A DNA stretch of 64,000 bases from Rebecca billardiae RCC1528 (GCA_965240325.2 OZ251223.1:4154001-4218000); one strand, 5' to 3'; numbered from the stretch's first letter, positions 18,855-38,976 are shown. Made by a program: numbers and translations. Notes: generated from the letters alone by a model not told the origin.

Positions 18855-19484
18855 GGCCCCTCGCTGATCCGCGCGTGCAGCCGCTGGAAGTTGACGCGCG
18901 CTCGGATCTCAGCTCGCGTCCACGGCGCGGCTGCCCCTTCCCGGACTCTGCGGCCCGAGTTCCGCCCACAAAAAGGCACAGCAGTGCAAACTGCAAAGCC
19001 GTTGAGGGATCCAGGCCGTCTGGCCGTACTACTACAAACAGCAGCGATGGCGGCGCAAGGGAGGGTACATATGCACGGACGTGCCCGCATGGCACCTCGA
19101 CTTCCCCTCCGAGCCGAGTAGCGGACTTCGAGGGATGCTGGCCGGCGCTTTCGTCGAGTGGTATCACGTTCGGGGCTGCCGAGCGTCCCGGGGACCGGGC
19201 CAGAGCCGCGGGACCCGGACAGGCGCGACTGGCCCCGGTCCTGGCCGGCGGACTCCGCCCGCGGTAACGCGAGTTCGCCGCGGCCCGCCAGTGGGCCTGG
19301 CGACGGACCGCGTGACGAGTTTCCTCGTGATATCGTCGTAACGTATGCTACTACGTCCGGTCCCGCAGGGCAGACTCGTGACTCGACTTGGCTGAGTATT
19401 GCTATACAGCTTATTTGATGGGCGGGCGCGTCGGCGGACGACGAGCGCAAGTTGGCCCGCAAGTCACTTAGACACTACTACTAG

Positions 19485-21714
19485 TCAGCGCTGCGCGCGG
19501 CCGATCGGCGGCGACGGCCGCTCGGCGTCGAAGAGCGCGTCCGCGAGCGGCATCTCCGCGAGCGCCGAGGGCGAGGGCTTCTCGCGCTCCCAGAGCGAGT
19601 CCCCGCGCAGCACGACCGGCGTGTGCGTCGCGCGCGCCGCGCGCAGCCGGCGGAGCGGGCTGTCGGCCGACGCGCGGCGCGCCGCGGCGTGCGCGGCGCG
19701 CGCGCCCGCGCCCGCGGCGGGCGAGCTGCCGGGCGGCCGGCGCGCGCTCCACGCGACGGCGCGCGGCGCGGTGCCCGCGCCGGCGCGCGCGGGCTTGGGC
19801 GGCGGCGACGACTTGCGCCGCGACGCGTCCGCGAGCGCGGCGGTCACGGCCGCATCAGCCGCCGCCTTGCCGCCGGGCGAGCCGGGCGGCGCGCCGCCGG
19901 CGCGGCTCGGCGCGCGGCGCGGCGGCGCGCTCGTCGAGCGCCCGGCGCGGTGCGCGGCGGGCTCGCGCGCGTCCGCGAGCGCCGCCTCGAGCTCGGCGGT
20001 GGAGAGCAGCGCCTCCTCCAGCCGCGCGCTCAGCACCGCGCGCTCCGCCGCCCACGCCTCGCGCGCCTCGGCGGTCGCGAGCGACGCGGCGACGAGCTCG
20101 GAGCCTCGCGCCTCGAGCGCGGCGCGCAGCCGCGCCAGCTCGGCGTCCGCGCCGCGCGCCGCCTCGGCGACGAGCTCGGAGGCGGCGGCGCGCGCCTCCT
20201 CGGCGGCAGCCTCGGCGTGCGCCGCGCCGCGCCGCGCGCCGCGCTCCGCCGCCTCGCGCCCCGCCGCCTCCGCCTCCGCCACCTCGGCGCGCAGCGCGCC
20301 GAGCGCCGCCGCCGCCGCCGCCGCCTCGCGCTCGGCCGCGTCCGCGCGCGCGCGCTCGCGCACCGCCGCCGCGCGCGCGCCGCCCTCGGCGTCGCGCGCG
20401 GCGTCGGCCGCGTCGCGCGCGGCGCGCAGCCGCGCCTCGGCCTCGGCCGCCGCCGCGCTCGCGCCGTCCGCCGCGCCGCGCGCCGCCGCCGCGCCGCTCT
20501 CCGCGCGCGCCGCGCGCCGCGCCGCCTCCTCCGCCGCGTCGCGCGCGGCGGCGCCGTCGGCGCGCGCCGCGTCCGCGTCCGCGCGCGCCGCGTCGCGCGC
20601 GCCCTCGGCGTCGGCGAGCCGCGCGCGGAGCGCGCTGAGCGCCGCGCGCGCCTGCGCCGCCTGCCCCTCCGCGTCCTCCGACCAGCCGTCCAGCTCGGCG
20701 CGCGCGCGCTCCGCCTCCGCGTCCGCGTCGGCCGCGCGCGCCGCCGCGTCGGCCGCGGCCGCGCGCGCGTCCGCCGCCTCGCGCGCCGCGGCGTGCGCGT
20801 CCGCCGCCGCGCGCTCGAGCGCGGCGCGCAGGTCGTCGGCGTCGGCCGCGGCGGCCTCGGCCTCGGCGGCGCGCGCGGACGCGGACGCGGCGTCCGTCTC
20901 CGCGCGCGCCGCGCGGCCGCGCGCCGCGTCCGCGTCCGCCGACGCGTCGAGCGCCGCGGCGCGCGCGCGCTCGGCCGCCGCCTCGGCCGCGGCCGCGCGG
21001 CCGCGCGCCGCGCTCAGCTCGTCGGCCGCGCGCGCCTCGGCCGCGTCGGCGCGCTCGGCGGCGCGCGCGGCGGCGGCGCGCGCGGCGGCGGCGGCGTCGT
21101 CCGCCTCGCGCAGCTGCGCGCGCAGCCGCGCGATCTCCACCGCCGCCGCCGCCGCCGAGGCGGTGCCGCCGTCGGCGACGCGCGCCGCCGCCGCCTCCGC
21201 CGCCTCGGCGCGCGCGCGCTGCCGTGCGCACTCGGCCTCGGCCGCGGCCGCGGCGCGCGCCGCGTCGGCGAGGGCGGCGCGCGCGGCGGCGGCCGCCTCG
21301 GCCGCGCCGCCCGCCGCCGCCTCGCGCGCGCCCGTCGCGCCCGCCGCCGCCGCCTCCGCCGCCTCCGCGCGCGCGCGCTCGCGCCCGAGCGCCGCCTCGG
21401 CCGCGTCCGCGCGCGCGCGCGTGCCCGCCGCGTCGGCGCGCGCCGCCTCCGCCTCGCGCGCCGCGCGCTCCGCCGCGGCGGCGTCGGTGCTGGTCGCGGC
21501 GGCGGCGGCGGCGGCGGCGCGCGCCTCGGCGGCGCGCGCGTCGCGCGCCTCCGCGTGCGCGCGCGCCACCTCCGCGTCCGCGTCCGCGCACGCGCGCTCG
21601 AGCAGCCCGCGCAGTCGCGTCGCCTCGGCGCGCGCGCCCTCGAGCTCGGCCGCGGCGCCGCCCGCGTCCGCGCGCGCGGCCGCGAGCTGCGCGCGCAGGC
21701 GCTCGGCCTCGGAC

Positions 21715-21748
<34 letters not shown>

Positions 21749-24574
21749 CATCGTCGGCGCCGGCGGCCGCCGCGCGCAGCCGCGCCGCCTCGCGCCGCGC
21801 CGTCTCCAGCGCCGCCCCCGCGTCCTCCGTGTCCGCGCGCGCGACCTCGAGCTGCGCGCGCAGCCGCTGCCGCTCCGCGCCAGCTGTGCCGAGCTGCGCG
21901 CGCACCGCGCTCAGCGCCGCGCGCAGCCGCTCGATCTCCGACGCGGCGGCGGCGGCGGCCTCGTCCTCGCGCACCGCCTCGTCGCGCGCGCGCTCGAGCT
22001 CGCGCTTGGCATCGGCCGCGGCGGCGCGCGCGGCCGCGAGCTGCGCGCGCAGACGCTCCGCCTCAGCCTCCGCCTCCGCCACCGCTCTCGCCGCCGCGCC
22101 GTCGCCGCCGCCGGCCGTGCCGCCGCCGCCGCCGGCCGCGCCGCCGCCGCTACCGCCGCCGGGGGGCGAGCGCGCGGCAGCGGCGGCGGCGGCGGCGCGC
22201 AGCTCAGCGGCCTCGCGCCGCGCGGCCTCGAGCTCGGCGGCCGCCTGCGCCGCCTCCTTGCGCGCTCCCGCGAGCTGCGCGCGCAGACGCCCCGCCTCCG
22301 AGCGCGGCGCTGAGGCGGCGGCATCGTCGCACGCCGCGCCGCGCCGCGCCGCGTCGGGCGCGGCCGCCGCGTCGGCCGCCTCGGCACGCGCCGTGGCGAG
22401 CTGCGCGCGCAGACGCTCCGCCTCCGCCATCGCGGCGGAGGCGGCGGCATCGTCGCATGCCGCCTCGCGCCGCGCCGCGTCGGCCGCGGCCGCCGCCTCC
22501 GCCGCCTCCGCGCGCGCGGCCGCGAGCTGCGCCCGCAGGCGCTCGGCCTCGGCGGTAGCGGCGGCGGCGCTGCCATCGCCCGAGGCGTTGGCGGCGCGCA
22601 GCCGCGCCGCCTCCTTGCGCGCCGCCTCGCGCTGCGCCTCCGCCTCCGCCGCCTCCTTGCGCGCGGCGCCGAGCTGCGCGCGCGCACGCTCCGCGGCCGC
22701 GCCCGCCTCCGTCGCCTCCGCGCGCGCGCTCGCGAGCTGCGAGCGCAGCCGCTCGGCCTCCGCAGCCGTCTCCGACGACTGCGCGCGCGCGGCGGCAAGC
22801 TGCGAGCGCAGCCGCTCCACCTCCGAGCTGGCCGCGGAGGCCGCCGCGTCGTCGCACGCCGCGCCGCGCCGCGCCGCGTCGGCCGCGGCCGCCGCCTCCG
22901 CCGCCTCGGCGCGCGCCGTGCCCAGCTGCGTTCGCAGCCGCTCCGCCTCCGAGCTCTGCTCCGCCGCCTCGGCGCGCGCGGTGGCGAGCTGCGCGCGCAG
23001 GCGGTCCGCCTCGGCCGCCGAGTCGCTCGACTCGGCGCGCGCTCCCGCGAGCTGCGCGCGCAGACGCTCCGCGTCCGAGGCCGCGGCGGAGGCGGCGGCA
23101 TCGTCGCATGCCGCCTCGCGCCGCGCCGCCTCGGCCGCGGCCGCCGCCTCCGCCGCCTCGGCGCGCGCGGCCGCGAGCTGCGCGCGCAGGCGCTCGGCCT
23201 CGGCCGCGGCTGCGGCAGCTGCGCCACCGTCGCTGGACGCGGCGGATGCACGCAGCCGCGCCGCCTCGCGCTGCGCCGCCTCGCGCTGCGCCTCCGCCTC
23301 CGCCGCCTCCTTGCGCGCGGCGCCGAGCTGCGCGCGCGCGCGGTCCGCGGCCGCGCCCGCCTCCGTCGCCTCCGCGCGCGCGCTCGCGAGCTGCGAGCGC
23401 AGGCCGTCGGCCTCGGTGGTCGCTGCGTGCGCCTCCGTGCGCGCGCCCGCGAGCTGCGAGCGCAGCCGCTCCGCGTCGGAGGCGGCGGCGGAGGCCGCCG
23501 CGTCGTCGCACGCCGCGCCGCGCCGCGCCGCGTCGGCCGCGGCCGCCGCCTCGGCCGCGTCCGCGCGCGCCGTGCCCAGCTGCGTTCGCAGCCGCTCCGC
23601 CTCCGCACCCGCTTCCGTCGCCTCGGCGCGCGCGGCGGCGAGCTGCGCGCGCAGCCGATCCGCCTCCTCCAGCGCGGCGGCGGCGGCGGCGGCGGGTGCG
23701 CCGCTGCCGCGCTCGCCACTCCGCGCGCTCGGCGCGCCGGCGTGGCGCGCCGCGTGCGCCCTCGTGCGGAGCTGCTCGCACTCGGCGCGCGCGGCGGCGA
23801 GCTGCGCGCGCAGCCGCGCCGCCTCCGCCTCGGCGGCGTCGGCGGCGTCGGCGGCGGCGCCGGCGGATGAGCGCGCGTGCGGCCGCTGCTGCTGCTCGCG
23901 CAGCTGCTCGACCTCGTGCTCCGCGCTCAGCGCGCGCATCGTCGCCGCGTGCGCGTCGGCGCGCGCCGCGTCGGCCGCGGCGCGCGCCGCAACCGCCTCC
24001 TCCGCCGCGCGCGCCGCCTCGGCGCGCCCGCCGTCGGCGGACGAGGCGGCGGTCTCGACGGCCGCCTGGGCGGCGGCGAGCTGCTGGCGCGCGGCGTGCG
24101 CCTCGGCACGCGCGTCGCCCGACGCGACGAGCTCGGCCTCCGCCGCGCGCGCCGCCGCCTCCGCCGCCTCGGCGCGCGCCGCGGAGCGCGCCGCGCCCGC
24201 GCGCGCGCTCGCCGCCTCCTGCTGCGCGCGCTCTGTCTCCGCGCGCGCCTCCGCGAGCTGTGCGCGGAGCGCGTCCGCCGCGGCGGCGTGCGCCGCGGCG
24301 GCGGCGGGCTCGGCGGGCTCGGCGCTCGCGCGCGCGCTCACGCCGCCCAGCTCCGCGTCCACGCCGAGGCTGCTGCCGCGAGAGCCGAACGCGGCGGCGG
24401 CGCGCGGCTCGCGCGGCGGCGGCGGCGCGCGGCCGGGCCCGGCGCCGCCGCCCGGCGGCGGCGGGGGCGTGCGCAGCGTGGCGCCGCCGCCGCCGCCGCC
24501 GCCGAGCGAGGGGCCGCGCGTGTACGGCGGGCGCTCACGCGCGTGCAGGCCGAGCGGCGCCGCGTCGGCCACCG

Positions 24575-24605
<31 letters not shown>

Positions 24606-25616
24606 CGCGCTCGCCCTGGCCGTCGCCTCGAGCGACGCGCGCCGCAGCGCCGCGGCGCGCGCACGCGCGCTGTCCTCGGCGTGGGCGCCGGGCGTGGTGC
24701 GCGCGGAGGCGGCGGGCTCGGGCGTGCGCTCGCGCGACGGCTGCGTCTCCACCTCGTCCTCGTCGCGCGCGCCCGCGCTCAGCTCGCGCAGCAGCCGAGC
24801 GGCCGCGGGCAGCAGCGGCGCGTCGCGCGCGCTCGCAAGCTGTAGCGCCGTGCGGCCGTGCGCGTCGCGCACGGCGGTGCCGGCGGCGCGCGCGAGGAGG
24901 CGCACGCGCTCCGCCCAGCCGTCCGCCGGCGCGCGCGCGCACGCCACGTGCAGCGGCGGCAGCCCGCCCGCGCCGGGCGCGCAGCGCGCGCACGCCGCCG
25001 CCACCTCGGCAGCCGGCCACCGCAGCAACAGCTCGAGCACGCGCGTGTGGCCGCAGTGCACGGCGAGGTGGAGCGCGGTCGCGCCCGAGGCGGTGGGCTG
25101 GTCGAGCCGCAGCGCCGCCGCCGGCCGCATGCGCGTCGCCGCCGCGCCCGCCGCGCGCACACGCAGCCACTCGACCGCGCGCGCGCGGTCGCACACGACG
25201 GCGACGTGCAGCGCGCTCGAGCCGTCGGGCGTGGTGGCGTCGAGGCTGGCGCCCGCCGCCTCGAGCGCGTCGAGCACGCGGACGTGCCCGCCCTTCGCCG
25301 CCCACAGCACCGCCGTCCAGCCGCGCGCGTCGCGCTCCTCCGTGTGCGCGCGGCGGCGGCGCAGCAGCCGGTTGACGACCGCGTGGTCGCCCGTCTCCGC
25401 CGCGTGCGCGAGGTGCTGCGCGACCTCGCCGAGGCGCTCCAGGCGGTCGAGCGTCTCGACCCACAGCGCCTCGGTCGCGTCGGGCGGCGGCAGGCGCTGC
25501 AGTGCCATCGCGATCGAAGCCGCTCGCGCCCCGCTCCGCGAGCGCGGCGCCACTTCGCGCTGGGGTGCTCCCCGCGAGTTGGCAAGCGCGGAGACGGCGG
25601 GCTGCGGCCGTTCCAT
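19485..25616 (-). CDS. Ankyrin-repeat protein with very long A/E/R-rich coiled coil (alternative start at 25508)
   Basis: N-terminal ankyrin repeats (GWTAVLWAAKGGH, GSSALHVAV, GATALHLAVHCGH, GRTALQLA) are followed by more than 1300 aa of heptad repeats (EAERLRAQLAAAR). Confidence 0.8.
22420..23660 (-). repeat. Coding higher-order tandem duplication (period ~651-654 bp) built of EAERLRxQLxxARA modules
   Basis: Marker strings recur at 22450/23101, 22657/23311 and 22921/23575. Confidence 0.8.
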
Positions 25617-25936
25617 GTTCCATTTCGACGTTTGAACTATCCGGCTGACCTAACCAAGGTCTCCGGACCAATACGTAGGCGCGTCGAGTCGAGAGTGCCG
25701 GCCTGTCGGGGTGCGCAGCCTGGGCCGCTGAAGTTCAGAAAGACGTGGGCGCGGGAAATGGGGAATGGCAGAATCGGAGATGAATTACGGTACCCCATTG
25801 CGGTTGTCCACCGTGCAGCTCTCTACAGAGGAGCATCGTCGCCGGCCGACGTCACGACACGACCGTAGTTGCGACCTGACGATAATGGTTCTGCCGCCGG
25901 CACGCCGTACTGTAATGGCGGCACTAGTGCCATGAC

Positions 25937-34308: not shown

Positions 34309-34874
34309 TAATCATGCGTCTGGCTAACTGTCTTCGTCTAGGGACGTCTGAATATGCCGGCCGGCCACGGCGTCGCGCGCGCCGAGGCGCCCTGACTCAG
34401 CCTGAGGCGGTGGCGGGCGGCGCGCTGCCGCGCTGCTGGCTGATGAATGGCTCGGGCTCACAGCGGCCCGCATCAGGCAATGCCGCGCGCTGCGCCGCGC
34501 GCCGGTCAGCCGGCCGACCACGGACCCGCCATCACGGGCAGTTCAAAGTGAGTTACGCAGCGTCAGACCGACGTACTTCGGGCCGGTGACCGTGACGTCG
34601 GACTGCCTCGTGTCGTCGGGCTGATGATGATCGTCACGTTGAGGCTCGCCTGCCGTGGAGTTCACTTGGCAGCGGCACTCAGAGCCATGCAGCCACAGGC
34701 CGCACTAGTGAGTGCCACGCAGGTTGGACATCATGCAGCAGTCTCCGGCTTACAGATTACAAGTCGTACGTAGTGACTGCGCGATTCCAATAAACTTCGC
34801 ATATTCTTGCTTCATGCTGCTCACAAGTCACGATGCCCAGTCCAGGCGGGTGTTCGGCCTTGCTGGTCACTTGG

Positions 34875-37071
34875 TCAGTTGGTGATCCACGCGGATTCAA
34901 GGGCGCTGAGTGAGGCCAGAATGCTGCCCCCGATGAACGTGGAGTACTTGCGCTCGGGCGGAGCAAGCTGCAACGCCGCGCGCGCGGCGATCAGCATGAG
35001 GGCAGAGGATGGAGAGAGGGCTTTGTGAGCATGGTTACGTCAGGCGCAGTTGCAACGCCGAACGCGGGCGCGCGCGTGTCATCGGAGCGCGGGCGCGCAC
35101 GATGTTGACCGACATCCCTGCTGGCGCCAGTTTGTCCATCTCTTTCTTGAGTCGCTCCGAGAGCTGATCGAACATCATGTTGGTACCTGCGAGCACGACT
35201 GACTGGAGCAGGTCCGGGCGGACGTCAGCGTCGCACTTCATGATGGCCTCCATCGCGAGCTCGTGGATCCCGTGCTGGTCGAGGCCGATGAGATCCGGCT
35301 GGAACAGCGCCTCAGGCGCCTTGAAGAGCTCTGCGCCGAGGGTGATAACTTTGCCGCCCGGCAGCTCGTAGTTCTTCTGCTTGATCTCGGTGGAAGGGCT
35401 GCTGGACCGAGTAGAGACATACCCGGCACGCTCCGCCTGGGCCAAACACTCGGAGGACATCGGCTCGGATGGCTCCTCGCCGGAATCCAGCGACACGTAC
35501 GCCAGCGTCTTGAGGATGTCCTCGACGGTTCCACGCGCGCTATTGGCCGACAGCTCGTAGAGGCCAAGCCCGACAAACAGCCCGACCATGCGCATGTAGA
35601 TCTCGTTGCCGCCCATCTCGAGCCGCTGGACCGCATGCGAGAGGACGTAGCCCTCGTAGACCGGCACCACGTGCGTCACGCCCTCGTCCGATTCGATCAC
35701 GAGCCCCGTCGTCTGCTGCGACGCGTAGAGGGCGAGCATCGCGTCCGTCAGCACGTACACTCCTGGGGCATTGCATTCCCCCAGCACGGTGGCCACCATC
35801 TTCGCCTGCTGGTCCTTGGGGTTGAGCGGCGGCTCGCTGAGAAGCACGTTGTGCTCCTCAGGGGCGGTGCACAGCTGGTTGTAGAACGTGTAGCGGTAGA
35901 GCTTCTTCATGTCCTCCCAGTTCGTCACGAAGCCGCGCGTGATCGGGTATGTGAGCATGAGCTGGCTGACCAGGGGCGCCACCTCGTCCCCCACCAGCGT
36001 CTGCGAGTCCGGGCCGGCGCCCCGCGCCCTGCCAACAACGGCGGGGAAGGTGCGGCGCGGTGCGTCGTCGCCGGCAAAGCCTGCTTGAATCATGCCCGAG
36101 AACGCCGCGATCACGATGGGCGTGTCGGCATCCGACTGCAGCGCGCGGCGGTGCGGCTCGTTGGTGCTGCCGTTGGCGGCTGCAGCCGCGCGCGGCGCAG
36201 CCAAGTGGCTGAGGCAGTGAGGGATGCCCTGGGATGCCTTGAGCATCTCGATTTGCACGTCCGTCACGATTGCCGACGCCTCGGCCCCCTTCAGAAGGTG
36301 CGAGCGGAGAGCGCGCGCATCTGCGGGCCACCCGTGTGAGGGTGGGTATGCGTGCGGACCTGCCGCAGCCTGGGCCAAAATGTCGAGCATGGCGGCACGC
36401 AGCGCGGCGCCAGTGCGCTCGCCACCGTGGAGGGGCAGCGAGATGCGTGGCGCCATCGCCTCCGCCTCGAGGGGTACCAGGCGCCGCTGCGCCGCGCTGC
36501 GCACACGCGTCTCGTAGCACTGCAGCAGCGGCGCATCCGTCGCGTCACCCGCCTCGTGCGTCCAACCCGCCGCGAGCACGACGAGGGGCGCGTGAGGCTG
36601 GTCGGCGATGGCGCGGAACTTGAAGAGCTGCTCGCAGTCGGCGCCCTCCTCCGCGTGGACGAGAACGTCGCACGTCGACGCGTGCACCTTCCACCGCGCC
36701 GCGCAGCGGTCCTCAATCTGCTCCGCGACGGTGACGAGCGTGTGCCCGACCACCGCCTCGAGCGCACGGCACTCGTTCTCCGGGTTGAGACGGGAGGGCA
36801 TGTCGAACGGAGCAAGTGGGACCTCCGAGGGGAGCAGCAGGTCGCGCGCTGTCTTCTCCGCGTGCGACCCCGTGATGCACACGTGGTGCGGCGTGTGCAG
36901 CGGCAGCTCGAGCAGGAGCTCGCGGAGCGGCGCGCCGTTCAGGGCGAGGGTCTCGGGGGCGGCATGATAACCGGCGTGTTCGTTGACGAGGGCGGCGACG
37001 AGGAGCGCCAGCCCGATCACCGTGGCCAACAGCCCACCTCGCGCCAGGGCGCTGGTGCCGCCGCGCAACAT
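34875..37071 (-). CDS. Actin-fold protein fused to an N-terminal signal/TM segment and an unknown ~290-aa domain; exons 37071-35101, 34967-34875 (687 aa)
   Basis: Actin signatures [58 protein letters not shown] and IMKCD. Intron 34968-35100 (GTGCGC..TGCAG) restores VNI|[21 protein letters not shown]. The N-terminus is [29 protein letters not shown]. Confidence 0.85.
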
Positions 37072-37322
37072 CCTGCGAGTGAACCGGGGAGTGTCGCCGA
37101 GACCGAGACCGAGACCGGCGGGTTGCGTTGCGCGCGCGCGGGGCCCGGGCGTGATAGCACGGCGAACCAATTTGGGGAATCGAACATTCGTTGTGCGAGA
37201 ACGCTCAACGCCCAATGGCAAGCGCAGACGGCTCATCTCGAATCTCGTCATGACAACGGCAAGTCGGGCACAAAAACCTTCCTGAGGTATACAATTAATC
37301 AACCCATGCAATCAGTCAGGCG

Positions 37323-38976
37323 GAGGCCACTTCACCGAAATCCAGGCTGGGGAGGCTAAACGCTGCACTGCTCAGGGGCGTTGCGCTAGCTGGACAAACG
37401 CCTTCCGGTCTTTTCAGATCTGCGCTTTTCAAAACGAAATGTTCTGCGCTCTGTCCAACGGCAAAGCGCGGCGGATGGCGGCTTCGCCGCCGCATGGGCG
37501 GGCGATGGCCGTTGCCCGCATAAAACGTGCGTCGGAGGCACGGAAGCGGGCAGATGGCGCGTCGCACGCGTCGTGGAACTCGGTCGCGACGCTCGCCAGC
37601 CTCAGCGCGCGCGGCGAAGCCACGTCCATGGGCGCCCAGCGTGCAGGCGGCACGGTCACGCCGCTCGGCCGCAGCGACCGGCCTCGCACGCGTCCTTGCC
37701 GCGCGAAAGGGCATCCCAGCTGCGGTCATTCGACTTGTGCGTCAGGAGCAGCGTGCCAGCTAGCCGACGCGCACGCGCCGCGAGCTGCACGGCGTGCGCA
37801 AACGTAGCCCGCCGAGCGTGCGCCGATGCGGCACAGCGGGAGAGGGCCCCGATCCGAAGGCGACTCTCGTCAGAGGCCCTCCGTAGCTTCGTGATCTACG
37901 AAGCTAGCGTCCTCGCGTTTGTCCAGCTGGCGCAACGCTCCGGTGGGGAGGCTAACAGCCTCCCCGCTCTCCCAGCGTGGGGAGGCTAGCGCTCCGCCGC
38001 TCCGGTCTTTCGCCGCTGACAAAACTTTAGAAAACGAAAGTCGCGCCACGGCGGACCCGGTGTTCCCGCGCGGCGGCGAAAGGGGCGCGGGGCCGGTGGC
38101 TCGCGATCCGAAGGGCAGTAGCTCGCGACCTCGCTTGGGCGGCGGCAGTGGCGCTGTGGCCCGGCGTGCACCATCCGCGCGGCTGTGCGCGATCGCGCGG
38201 TCCCGTTCGTCGCCACGCCGCGCGCGACCGTTCACGCCACAGCCTTTCTGCACTGGCATGCACCCCTTGCAAGCGCATGACGGCGGAGAGCTCAGAGAGC
38301 CCGTCACGCGCGTGACGACCGTGTGAGATGGGTTGTGCCGATGTGAACGCTGCCTTCGTAGGCTTTCTGATGAGCCCATCCAACGTTCAGACCATTCCTA
38401 ACTGCTGCAAGATGAGTCATCGCCTGCCGCGCGGCCATGGAGTTGTGGACAGTACAGCAGCCATTCATGATCCTCATGCCCGCCTCATGGGCCGGCGCGT
38501 GCCTCCCTGACCATGGAGACAAGCTGTACAACCCATCCCACACGGTCGTCACGCGCGTGACGGGCTCTCTGAGCTCTCCGCCGTCATGCGCTTGCAAGGG
38601 GTGCATGCCAGTGCGGAAAGGCTGTGGCGTGAACGGTCGCGCGCGGCGTGGCGACGAACGGGACCGCGCGATCGCGCACAGCCGCGCGGATGGTGCACGC
38701 CGGGCCACAGCGCCACTGCCGCCGCCCAAGCGAGGTCGCGAGCTACTGCCCTTCGGATCGCGAGCCACCGGCCCCGCGCCCCTTTCGCCGCCGCGCGGGA
38801 ACACCGGGTCCGCCGTGGCGCGACTTTCGTTTTCTAAAGTTTTGTCAGCGGCGAAAGACCGGAGCGGCGGAGCGCTAGCCTCCCCACGCTGGGAGAGCGG
38901 GGAGGCTGTTAGCCTCCCCACCCTGGACCAGTGCAGCGTTTAGCCTCCCCAGCCTGGATTTCGGTGAAGTGGCCTC
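37323..38976. mobile_element. Foldback DNA element with GAG...CTC termini, AGGCG 5-bp flanking direct repeat and long inverted arms
   Basis: 37323-37370 is the reverse complement of 38929-38976. 37942-38336 is the reverse complement of 38528-38922 (395 bp, few mismatches). AGGCG occurs at 37318-37322 and 38977-38981. Confidence 0.85.
37375..37941. mobile_element. MITE nested in the left arm of the 37323-38976 element
   Basis: 27-bp TIR GGGGCGTTGCGCTAGCTGGACAAACGC versus reverse complement GGAGCGTTGCGCCAGCTGGACAAACGC (2 mismatches). The segment is absent from the right arm. Confidence 0.8.

Follow-up and report, generated by a model that had tools for sequence, protein, structure and literature searches.

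We describe a gene of the haptophyte Rebecca billardiae RCC1528 in which an actin is joined, in one continuous frame, to a hydrophobic leader and to a domain with the predicted fold of a small GTPase. It is found in a stretch of 64,000 nucleotides (nt) (GCA_965240325.2, OZ251223.1:4154001-4218000), which we will call the window; positions are counted from its first letter. The fusion of a leader with actin is real, and it is conserved in a small family from marine protists which appears to be undescribed: in the full-text literature we have found no description of actins with a signal peptide or an anchor. A location outside the cytosol is the best reading of the sequence features of these proteins and probably the right one. 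We searched the 72-Mb assembly (41 contigs) for paralogs. Genes with the same architecture are present on contigs C14, C30 and C20; together with the window copy, on contig C3, they make four full genes. The cytosolic Hsp90 of this genome agrees with a haptophyte origin: it has 96% identity with that of the haptophyte Chrysoculter rhomboideus, 91% with that of Diacronema lutheri and 88% with that of Emiliania huxleyi.

Leader, G-like domain and actin in one frame

The gene lies on the minus strand and has two exons, with 657 and 30 codons, which give a product of 687 amino acids (aa). The order in the product is a hydrophobic leader, a domain of about 240 aa, a disordered linker and actin. The sequence-only reading had proposed a single exon of 657 codons followed by a spliced last exon: the coordinates of this model are correct, and its strand is the minus one. 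Exon 1 (37071-35101, minus strand) is part of a frame which is open from 35035 to 37311 on the same strand and contains 758 codons. This DNA has 65-70% guanine plus cytosine (GC), and its other frames are often open by chance over 60-350 codons. The 758 codons found here, in which two domains can be recognised, are far beyond this range and are not of this chance type. The two-exon gene is real. Its start is placed by homology: the first in-frame ATG of the three paralogs directly adjoins the hydrophobic run, so that Met1 is probably at 37071, with two more in-frame ATGs upstream in the open frame, which extends to 37311. The donor of the intron, GTGCGCGC, is common to the window copy and the three paralogs. 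Short introns which start with GTGCGCGC and are rich in CG repeats also recur in unrelated genes: they are found both in the paralogs of the actin fusion and in a cytosolic Hsp90 (L027, G000:C24). Some of them stay in frame, and open reading frame (ORF) callers which are blind to exons read 'RARARA' peptides through them.

The features of the gene are the following. Models were obtained with AlphaFold 2 (AF2); their local confidence is given as the predicted local distance difference test (pLDDT).

37069..37071, minus strand: Met1 of the 687-aa product, the likely start; its homologue in C14, C30 and C20 is their first in-frame ATG
36985..37038, minus strand: hydrophobic leader or signal-anchor, residues 12-29, an uncharged run of 18 residues
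36199..36930, minus strand: Cys-rich G-domain-like (pseudo-GTPase) domain, residues 48-291, predicted from AF2, structure alignment and Foldseek
36133..36198, minus strand: disordered linker, residues 292-313, pLDDT below 50
36145-36150, minus strand: dibasic pair R308-R309 of the window copy, within the linker
35101..36132, minus strand: exon-1 part of the actin domain, residues 314-657 (Pfam PF00022, PDB actins, Foldseek)
36085..36108, minus strand: equivalent of the phosphate-1 loop, AAFSGMIQ for DNGSGMCK (D11A, N12A, G13F and K18Q with respect to 1c0f)
35671..35694, minus strand: equivalent of the phosphate-2 loop, ESDEGVTH for DSGDGVTH (D154E, G156D, D157E; H161 kept)
35386..35478, minus strand: stretch of 31 residues in subdomain 4, including a copy-specific insertion of about 20 residues, missing from 12 of 12 other aligned members
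34968..35100, minus strand: intron of 133 nt, GT..AG, phase 0 (GTGCGC...TTGCAG), at the same position in C14, C30 and C20
34875..34967, minus strand: last exon, 30 codons and TGA (LAPPERKYS...AWITN-stop), ending at actin position 359
34821..34874, minus strand: in-frame remnant past the stop (PSDQQGRTPAWTGHRDL-stop), with a faint likeness to the lost ...EYDESGP..VHRK.. tail

The actin fold is clearly apparent. It had been placed from residue ~313 (nt ~36135), and the PDB actins do match from residue ~313-319, with an expectation value (E) of ~1e-89. Pfam PF00022 gives 259 bits against a cut-off of 27 (E 6.1e-77) for residues 396-745 of the 758-codon frame. The AF2 model of the actin part has a pLDDT of ~90 and presents the four subdomains of actin; Foldseek aligns it to actins with a template modelling (TM) score of 0.80-0.84 by target, an identity of 42-45%, a root-mean-square deviation of ~3 Å and E ~1e-37. 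With conventional actin the window copy shares this fold, an identity of ~42-47%, the motifs G[FY]AGDDAP and VPxYEGY, H161 (H467 in our numbering) and the APPERKYS segment. The differences are also considerable. Besides the leader and an N-terminal extension of 300 aa, eight residues are replaced: D11, N12, G13, K18, Q137 (here D443), D154, G156 and D157. Judging from these replacements, the actin of the window copy appears to have lost its nucleotide (ATP) site. The D-loop is five residues shorter, and the region of the copy-specific insertion (residues 532-562) has a pLDDT below 50. The TGA after actin position 359 removes the C-terminal helix (360-375), which corresponds to the last 16 residues; the paralogs run at least 16 codons further, to the usual end of actin. 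The last exon had been thought to complete the actin: the exon is there, but it ends 16 residues short of the normal C-terminus. Past the stop the frame still resembles the lost tail in about 5 of 17 positions only, by alignment with the DNA of the three paralogs, which is suggestive at most. The shortened D-loop and the missing C-terminus are indirect signs that polymerisation may also have been lost.

The domain between leader and linker (N-domain in what follows) had been described as ~290 aa of Cys-containing sequence of unknown fold. The cysteines are indeed there, but its fold can be recognised: it is modelled as a G-domain. An AF2 model of residues 51-286, built with seven homologues, has a predicted TM score of 0.78, and in the model of the whole protein the domain reaches a pLDDT of ~90. 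VIA-align against 48,161 chains places it next to Arf (Z 12.5, 162 residues), RagD (12.2), Sar1 (11.1) and SRbeta (9.1), with Arf1 and ARL10B also among the top matches; with Foldseek the matches include Ras and Sar1 (E ~1e-5), and its ESM Atlas neighbours are GTPases, all of them. Strands and helices follow each other as in a G-domain, and the six-stranded topology is shared with Arf, Sar and SRbeta over 145-162 residues (Z 9-12.5). However the residues that define these GTPases are missing. The position of the P-loop (GxxxxGK[ST]) reads TGSHAEKT in the window copy, where the Lys and Thr occupy columns that vary without restriction in the family; in the family alignments neither the G3 motif DxxG nor the G4 motif NKxD is present at the corresponding strands. 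A Pfam search of the domain gave no match at E<=1, GTPase models included, and a feature search of the ESM Atlas gave no usable match. Instead the family has six invariant cysteines (C65, C101, C123, C134, C146 and C185), which are conserved down to ~33% identity together with a few His, Asp and Arg. The window copy keeps all six, as well as the motifs HxC, EDxC..R and CD(V)L(V)H. From the model, the N-domain is predicted to be a small-GTPase fold without G motifs, a dead GTPase.

A small family of fusions

The N-domain profile was compared with 1.84 billion representative proteins and found only 27 clusters. In every full-length cluster (620-820 aa) the Pfam Actin domain is found behind the N-domain; the short ones are fragments. 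The fusion of both parts, which had been proposed from a continuous frame, is thus conserved in every full-length relative that we have found. The dinoflagellate Effrenium voratum provides one member, whose first exon lies on a genomic contig of 76.5 kb. Other members are found in intronless contigs of 2.0-2.6 kb from marine samples, with a single frame across the junction, which argues for transcription of the fusion as one unit in those organisms. A viral (viractin-like) origin was also considered and rejected: the N-domain profile found no relative among the viral contigs scanned. Two members, L025 (Ga0314709_10016265) and P0040 (Effrenium voratum), have an extra acidic or Lys-rich segment of 100-150 residues between the leader and the G-like domain, so that the region after the leader is variable across the family.

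Within R. billardiae the N-domain of the window copy has 69-72% identity with those of C14, C30 and C20. The loss of D11 (to A or T), Q137D and D154E are common to the four genes, and are therefore older than the duplications. When we compare with an external member of the family (P0002), all N-domains are equally distant, with 47-50% identity. The actins differ: identity is 71, 66 and 58% in the paralogs, which have a full C-terminus, and 47% in the window copy. By these comparisons the window copy appears to be the most derived, or most decayed, of the full genes. A fifth copy, much more degenerate, is found on contig C35 (L007, G000:C35:454314-457778; minus strand, 178-2208), within an open frame of 1194 codons. 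A leader is present and the Cys-rich G-like domain can be recognised; they are followed by ~270 residues of low complexity, rich in Ala, Arg and Gly; of actin it keeps only a vestige of the start (..GTMAAGFGGEGAPR..).

The junction has its own conserved feature. Among 13 aligned members, 12 have a dibasic pair (RR, KR or RK) 8-15 residues ahead of the first strand of actin. What follows the pair in the best-kept member (LEDDIAAIVIDNGSG) resembles the N-terminus of a normal actin. If the body of the protein is lumenal, a cut by a kexin-type protease which frees the actin would be a coherent reading of this candidate site. The linker of the window copy also holds one N-x-S sequon, at N300.

There is a precedent for a partner directly ahead of actin in protists: the ubiquitin-actin fusions of chlorarachniophytes (PMC6332867, which cites Archibald et al. 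2003). The similarity lies in the protist lineage and in a partner fused ahead of the actin N-terminus; the difference lies in the partner, a cytosolic ubiquitin in that case, and here a leader with a putative pseudo-GTPase, a dibasic junction and a degenerate actin site. In ubiquitin fusions in general, the N-terminal ubiquitin is removed by processing.

Location of the protein and state of the window copy

The hydrophobic stretch which had been noticed behind the start is present, with 18 residues in positions 12-29. Its flanks have a charge of +3 on the N side and -2 on the C side, and it is helical in the AF2 model, with low confidence. We have read the topology by hand from sequence features: length of the run, charge of the flanks and residues at its end. 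In each of the 17 N-termini of the family that were examined, residues 1 to ~50 include a hydrophobic run. This hydrophobic region (h-region) is short in five members (P0005, P0017, P0009, P0012 and L025), with no more than 9-17 residues which start from Met1 or close beside it, and small residues come next (..TNA, ..SNA, ..ARA), as in a cleavable signal peptide. Three of the five have either a stop in frame upstream or an end like A-x-A. An in-frame stop is found upstream in L025, in L026 (the contig that encodes P0005) and also in an anchored member, L024; therefore their N-termini are complete. The remaining members, including the window copy and its paralogs, have anchors of 18-26 residues. 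The N-flank is more positive than the C-flank in 9 of 12 anchored forms, and in most of them the helix is preceded by Arg and followed by acidic or neutral residues. By the positive-inside rule such a charge on the N side corresponds to N-in, C-out, with the body of the protein in the lumen.

These features suggest entry into the endoplasmic reticulum (ER), and a lumenal or extracellular body is the side on which we would place most weight, with appreciable doubt. The six widely spaced invariant cysteines could form three disulfides, which would suit a lumenal domain. Their invariance could instead reflect metal binding; a Zn-finger reading of the Cys and His residues is less likely, given the wide spacing and the lack of CxxC pairs. 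The asparagine N12 of an N-G-S sequon in the phosphate loop of actin is replaced in most members. Its loss would avoid glycosylation in the ER, yet the site as a whole is decaying, this residue included, and we give it little weight. Of the proposal that this is an actin with a signal or transmembrane segment, the leader is confirmed in every N-terminus examined and the placement outside the cytosol stays as a reasonable reading of the sequences. The roles which had been proposed for it, a decoy or a scaffold for scales, would be speculative.

The two halves of the window copy have evolved in a different way. We estimated omega, the ratio of nonsynonymous (dN) to synonymous substitution, from three-taxon branch estimates on the C3 branch (the window copy), with 200 bootstraps. 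In the N-domain omega is 0.33 (0.21-0.52) and none of the 200 bootstraps reaches 1: this half appears to be under purifying selection. In the actin part omega is 0.82 (0.56-1.28), in contrast with the very strong constraint which is normal for conventional actin. With respect to the outgroup, dN of the N-domain is equal among the paralogs, and dN of the window-copy actin is 2.5 times higher. In C14 the actin branch has an omega of 0.33 in spite of the shared loss of the site, which implies that a nucleotide-free actin would still matter in this clade. A neutral simulation with the same amount of change gives on average 3.4-6.9 stops, whereas none is observed in the 344 actin codons; under neutrality a frame without stops has a probability of 0.000-0.027 when all settings of the grid are taken, and of 0.004-0.03 with GC-rich compositions. 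The actin part of the window copy appears to be very relaxed, but probably not yet free. The intact frame had been taken as a sign of selection: this is the case for the N-domain, and barely for actin.

Upstream of the gene we find a foldback transposon:

37323..38976, strand not assigned: foldback transposon with an inverted repeat of 395 nt, 99% complementary, and outer arms of 56 nt
37372-37942, strand not assigned: element of ~570 nt nested in the foldback transposon, with at least 13 genome copies (98-99% identity)

The transposon has at least 27 copies in the genome, with 91-99% identity. The repeats around the gene are thus young, not decayed as they had been described. This insertion may have displaced the promoter of the window copy.

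When all of this is put together, we incline somewhat towards a protein outside the cytosol, made of a leader, a Cys-rich pseudo-GTPase, a dibasic linker and actin. The leader would carry the protein into the ER. Anchors would be oriented N-in, C-out, so that the G-like domain and actin would face the lumen or the exterior of the cell. The dibasic site would then stand just ahead of the position of the normal actin N-terminus; a kexin-type protease might cut there and set the actin free, and the G-like domain would be a membrane tether or a pro-domain. In the clade of this genome the ATP pocket would have been lost before the paralogs split, as the shared Q137D, D154E and loss of D11 suggest; without it, whatever work actin still does would be done free of nucleotide. 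The window copy would have added K18Q, G13F, the shorter D-loop, the disordered insertion of ~20 residues and the stop that removes the last helix. If it has a function, leader and G-like domain would most likely carry it, and actin would be a passive scaffold or on its way to being lost. A more specific version is doubtful: the family would be translocated into the ER, a disulfide-bonded pseudo-GTPase would help folding as tether or pro-domain, and a cut at the dibasic site would free an actin for work in the secretory pathway or extracellularly, for instance on the scales, coccoliths or theca of haptophytes and dinoflagellates, with the window copy as a nucleotide-free derivative.

Several observations weigh against this interpretation. 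Those which concern the window copy are its truncated C-terminus, an actin omega which cannot be distinguished from 1 on the C3 branch, and a young transposon which ends only 252 nt upstream of the ATG. Furthermore, the only other contig with this protein, a Logan contig of 3066 nt, retains the intron and stops at the edge of the transposon: it looks genomic. Relaxed actin, truncation and transposon all fit a copy which is not expressed and decays, in other words a dead or dying paralog without function, whose frame has been kept by chance in GC-rich DNA. The interval of omega up to 1.28, the faint in-frame likeness beyond the premature stop, the copy-specific disordered insertion and the shortened D-loop would also agree with such an end. 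However the N-domain has kept its six cysteines and its other invariant residues, has not moved further from the outgroup than in the paralogs and has an upper bound of omega of 0.52; the actin part is free of stops (neutral probability 0.004-0.03) and is still modelled with a pLDDT of ~90. We consider a dying copy unlikely.

Other objections concern the location. The anchored structural neighbours of the N-domain, SRbeta and Arl10, face the cytosol, and they share with our proteins an N-terminal membrane attachment; a transmembrane region in this position is typical of them (PMC8358228). The leader might then be a type III anchor (N-out, C-in) or an anchor in the outer membrane of an organelle, with a tethered actin which faces the cytosol and seeds, caps or docks filaments. 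The best structural matches of the N-domain, Arf, Sar and Rag GTPases, together with SRbeta at Z 9.1, are in line with it. Actin is regarded as strictly cytosolic or nuclear, and conventional actin folds only with the cytosolic chaperonin CCT; to our knowledge there is no CCT in the lumen of the ER, and a cytosolic site would meet this need. On the other hand, the h-regions of five members, with 9-17 residues at Met1, are too short for a stable span and have the shape of a cleavable signal. Most anchored members have their positive charge before the helix, the opposite of Arl10-type anchors, a pattern that suggests the opposite orientation in the membrane, and six widely spaced invariant cysteines are unusual in a cytosolic G-domain. 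An actin tethered on the cytosolic side seems to us quite improbable. The leader could also open a bipartite signal which targets the protein to a complex, red-derived plastid, either to the lumen of the chloroplast ER or to the periplastidial compartment. The named hosts are a haptophyte and a dinoflagellate, which have complex plastids where import begins with a signal peptide. But only 10-25 residues separate the predicted cleavage site from the conserved domain in several members, too few for a transit peptide; no aromatic residue follows this site, and the anchored members would not be released. Plastid targeting is very improbable.

If localisation confirms a protein outside the cytosol, a signal or anchor and a disulfide-type domain ahead of actin would contradict the view of a strictly cytosolic or nuclear actin. 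It would offer a tractable entry to an actin that folds or acts outside the cytosol, in the haptophyte copies without ATP. That a fold of the actin superfamily can work in the lumen of the ER is apparent from BiP/Hsp70, an ATPase of that compartment with an intact site which is independent of CCT; it belongs to a different family and is an analogy only. The window locus would be a natural end-point, with leader and G-like domain constrained and actin drifting, and it indicates which half is selected here. Its value is limited by being the most degenerate full paralog.

Neighbouring frames

Elsewhere in the window long open frames are also found. Between 30500 and 33000 the DNA has 74-78% GC and overlapping frames of 300-450 codons on both strands, with no Pfam match; they are likely driven by composition. 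Among nine neighbouring long frames compared with Pfam, only one matched. It lies at 19399-25635, a region of 6 kb in which each strand has an open frame of ~2040-2080 codons: the plus frame has no family match, and the minus frame (2043 codons, 19485-25616) has N-terminal ankyrin repeats (Pfam Ank_2, E 5e-18).

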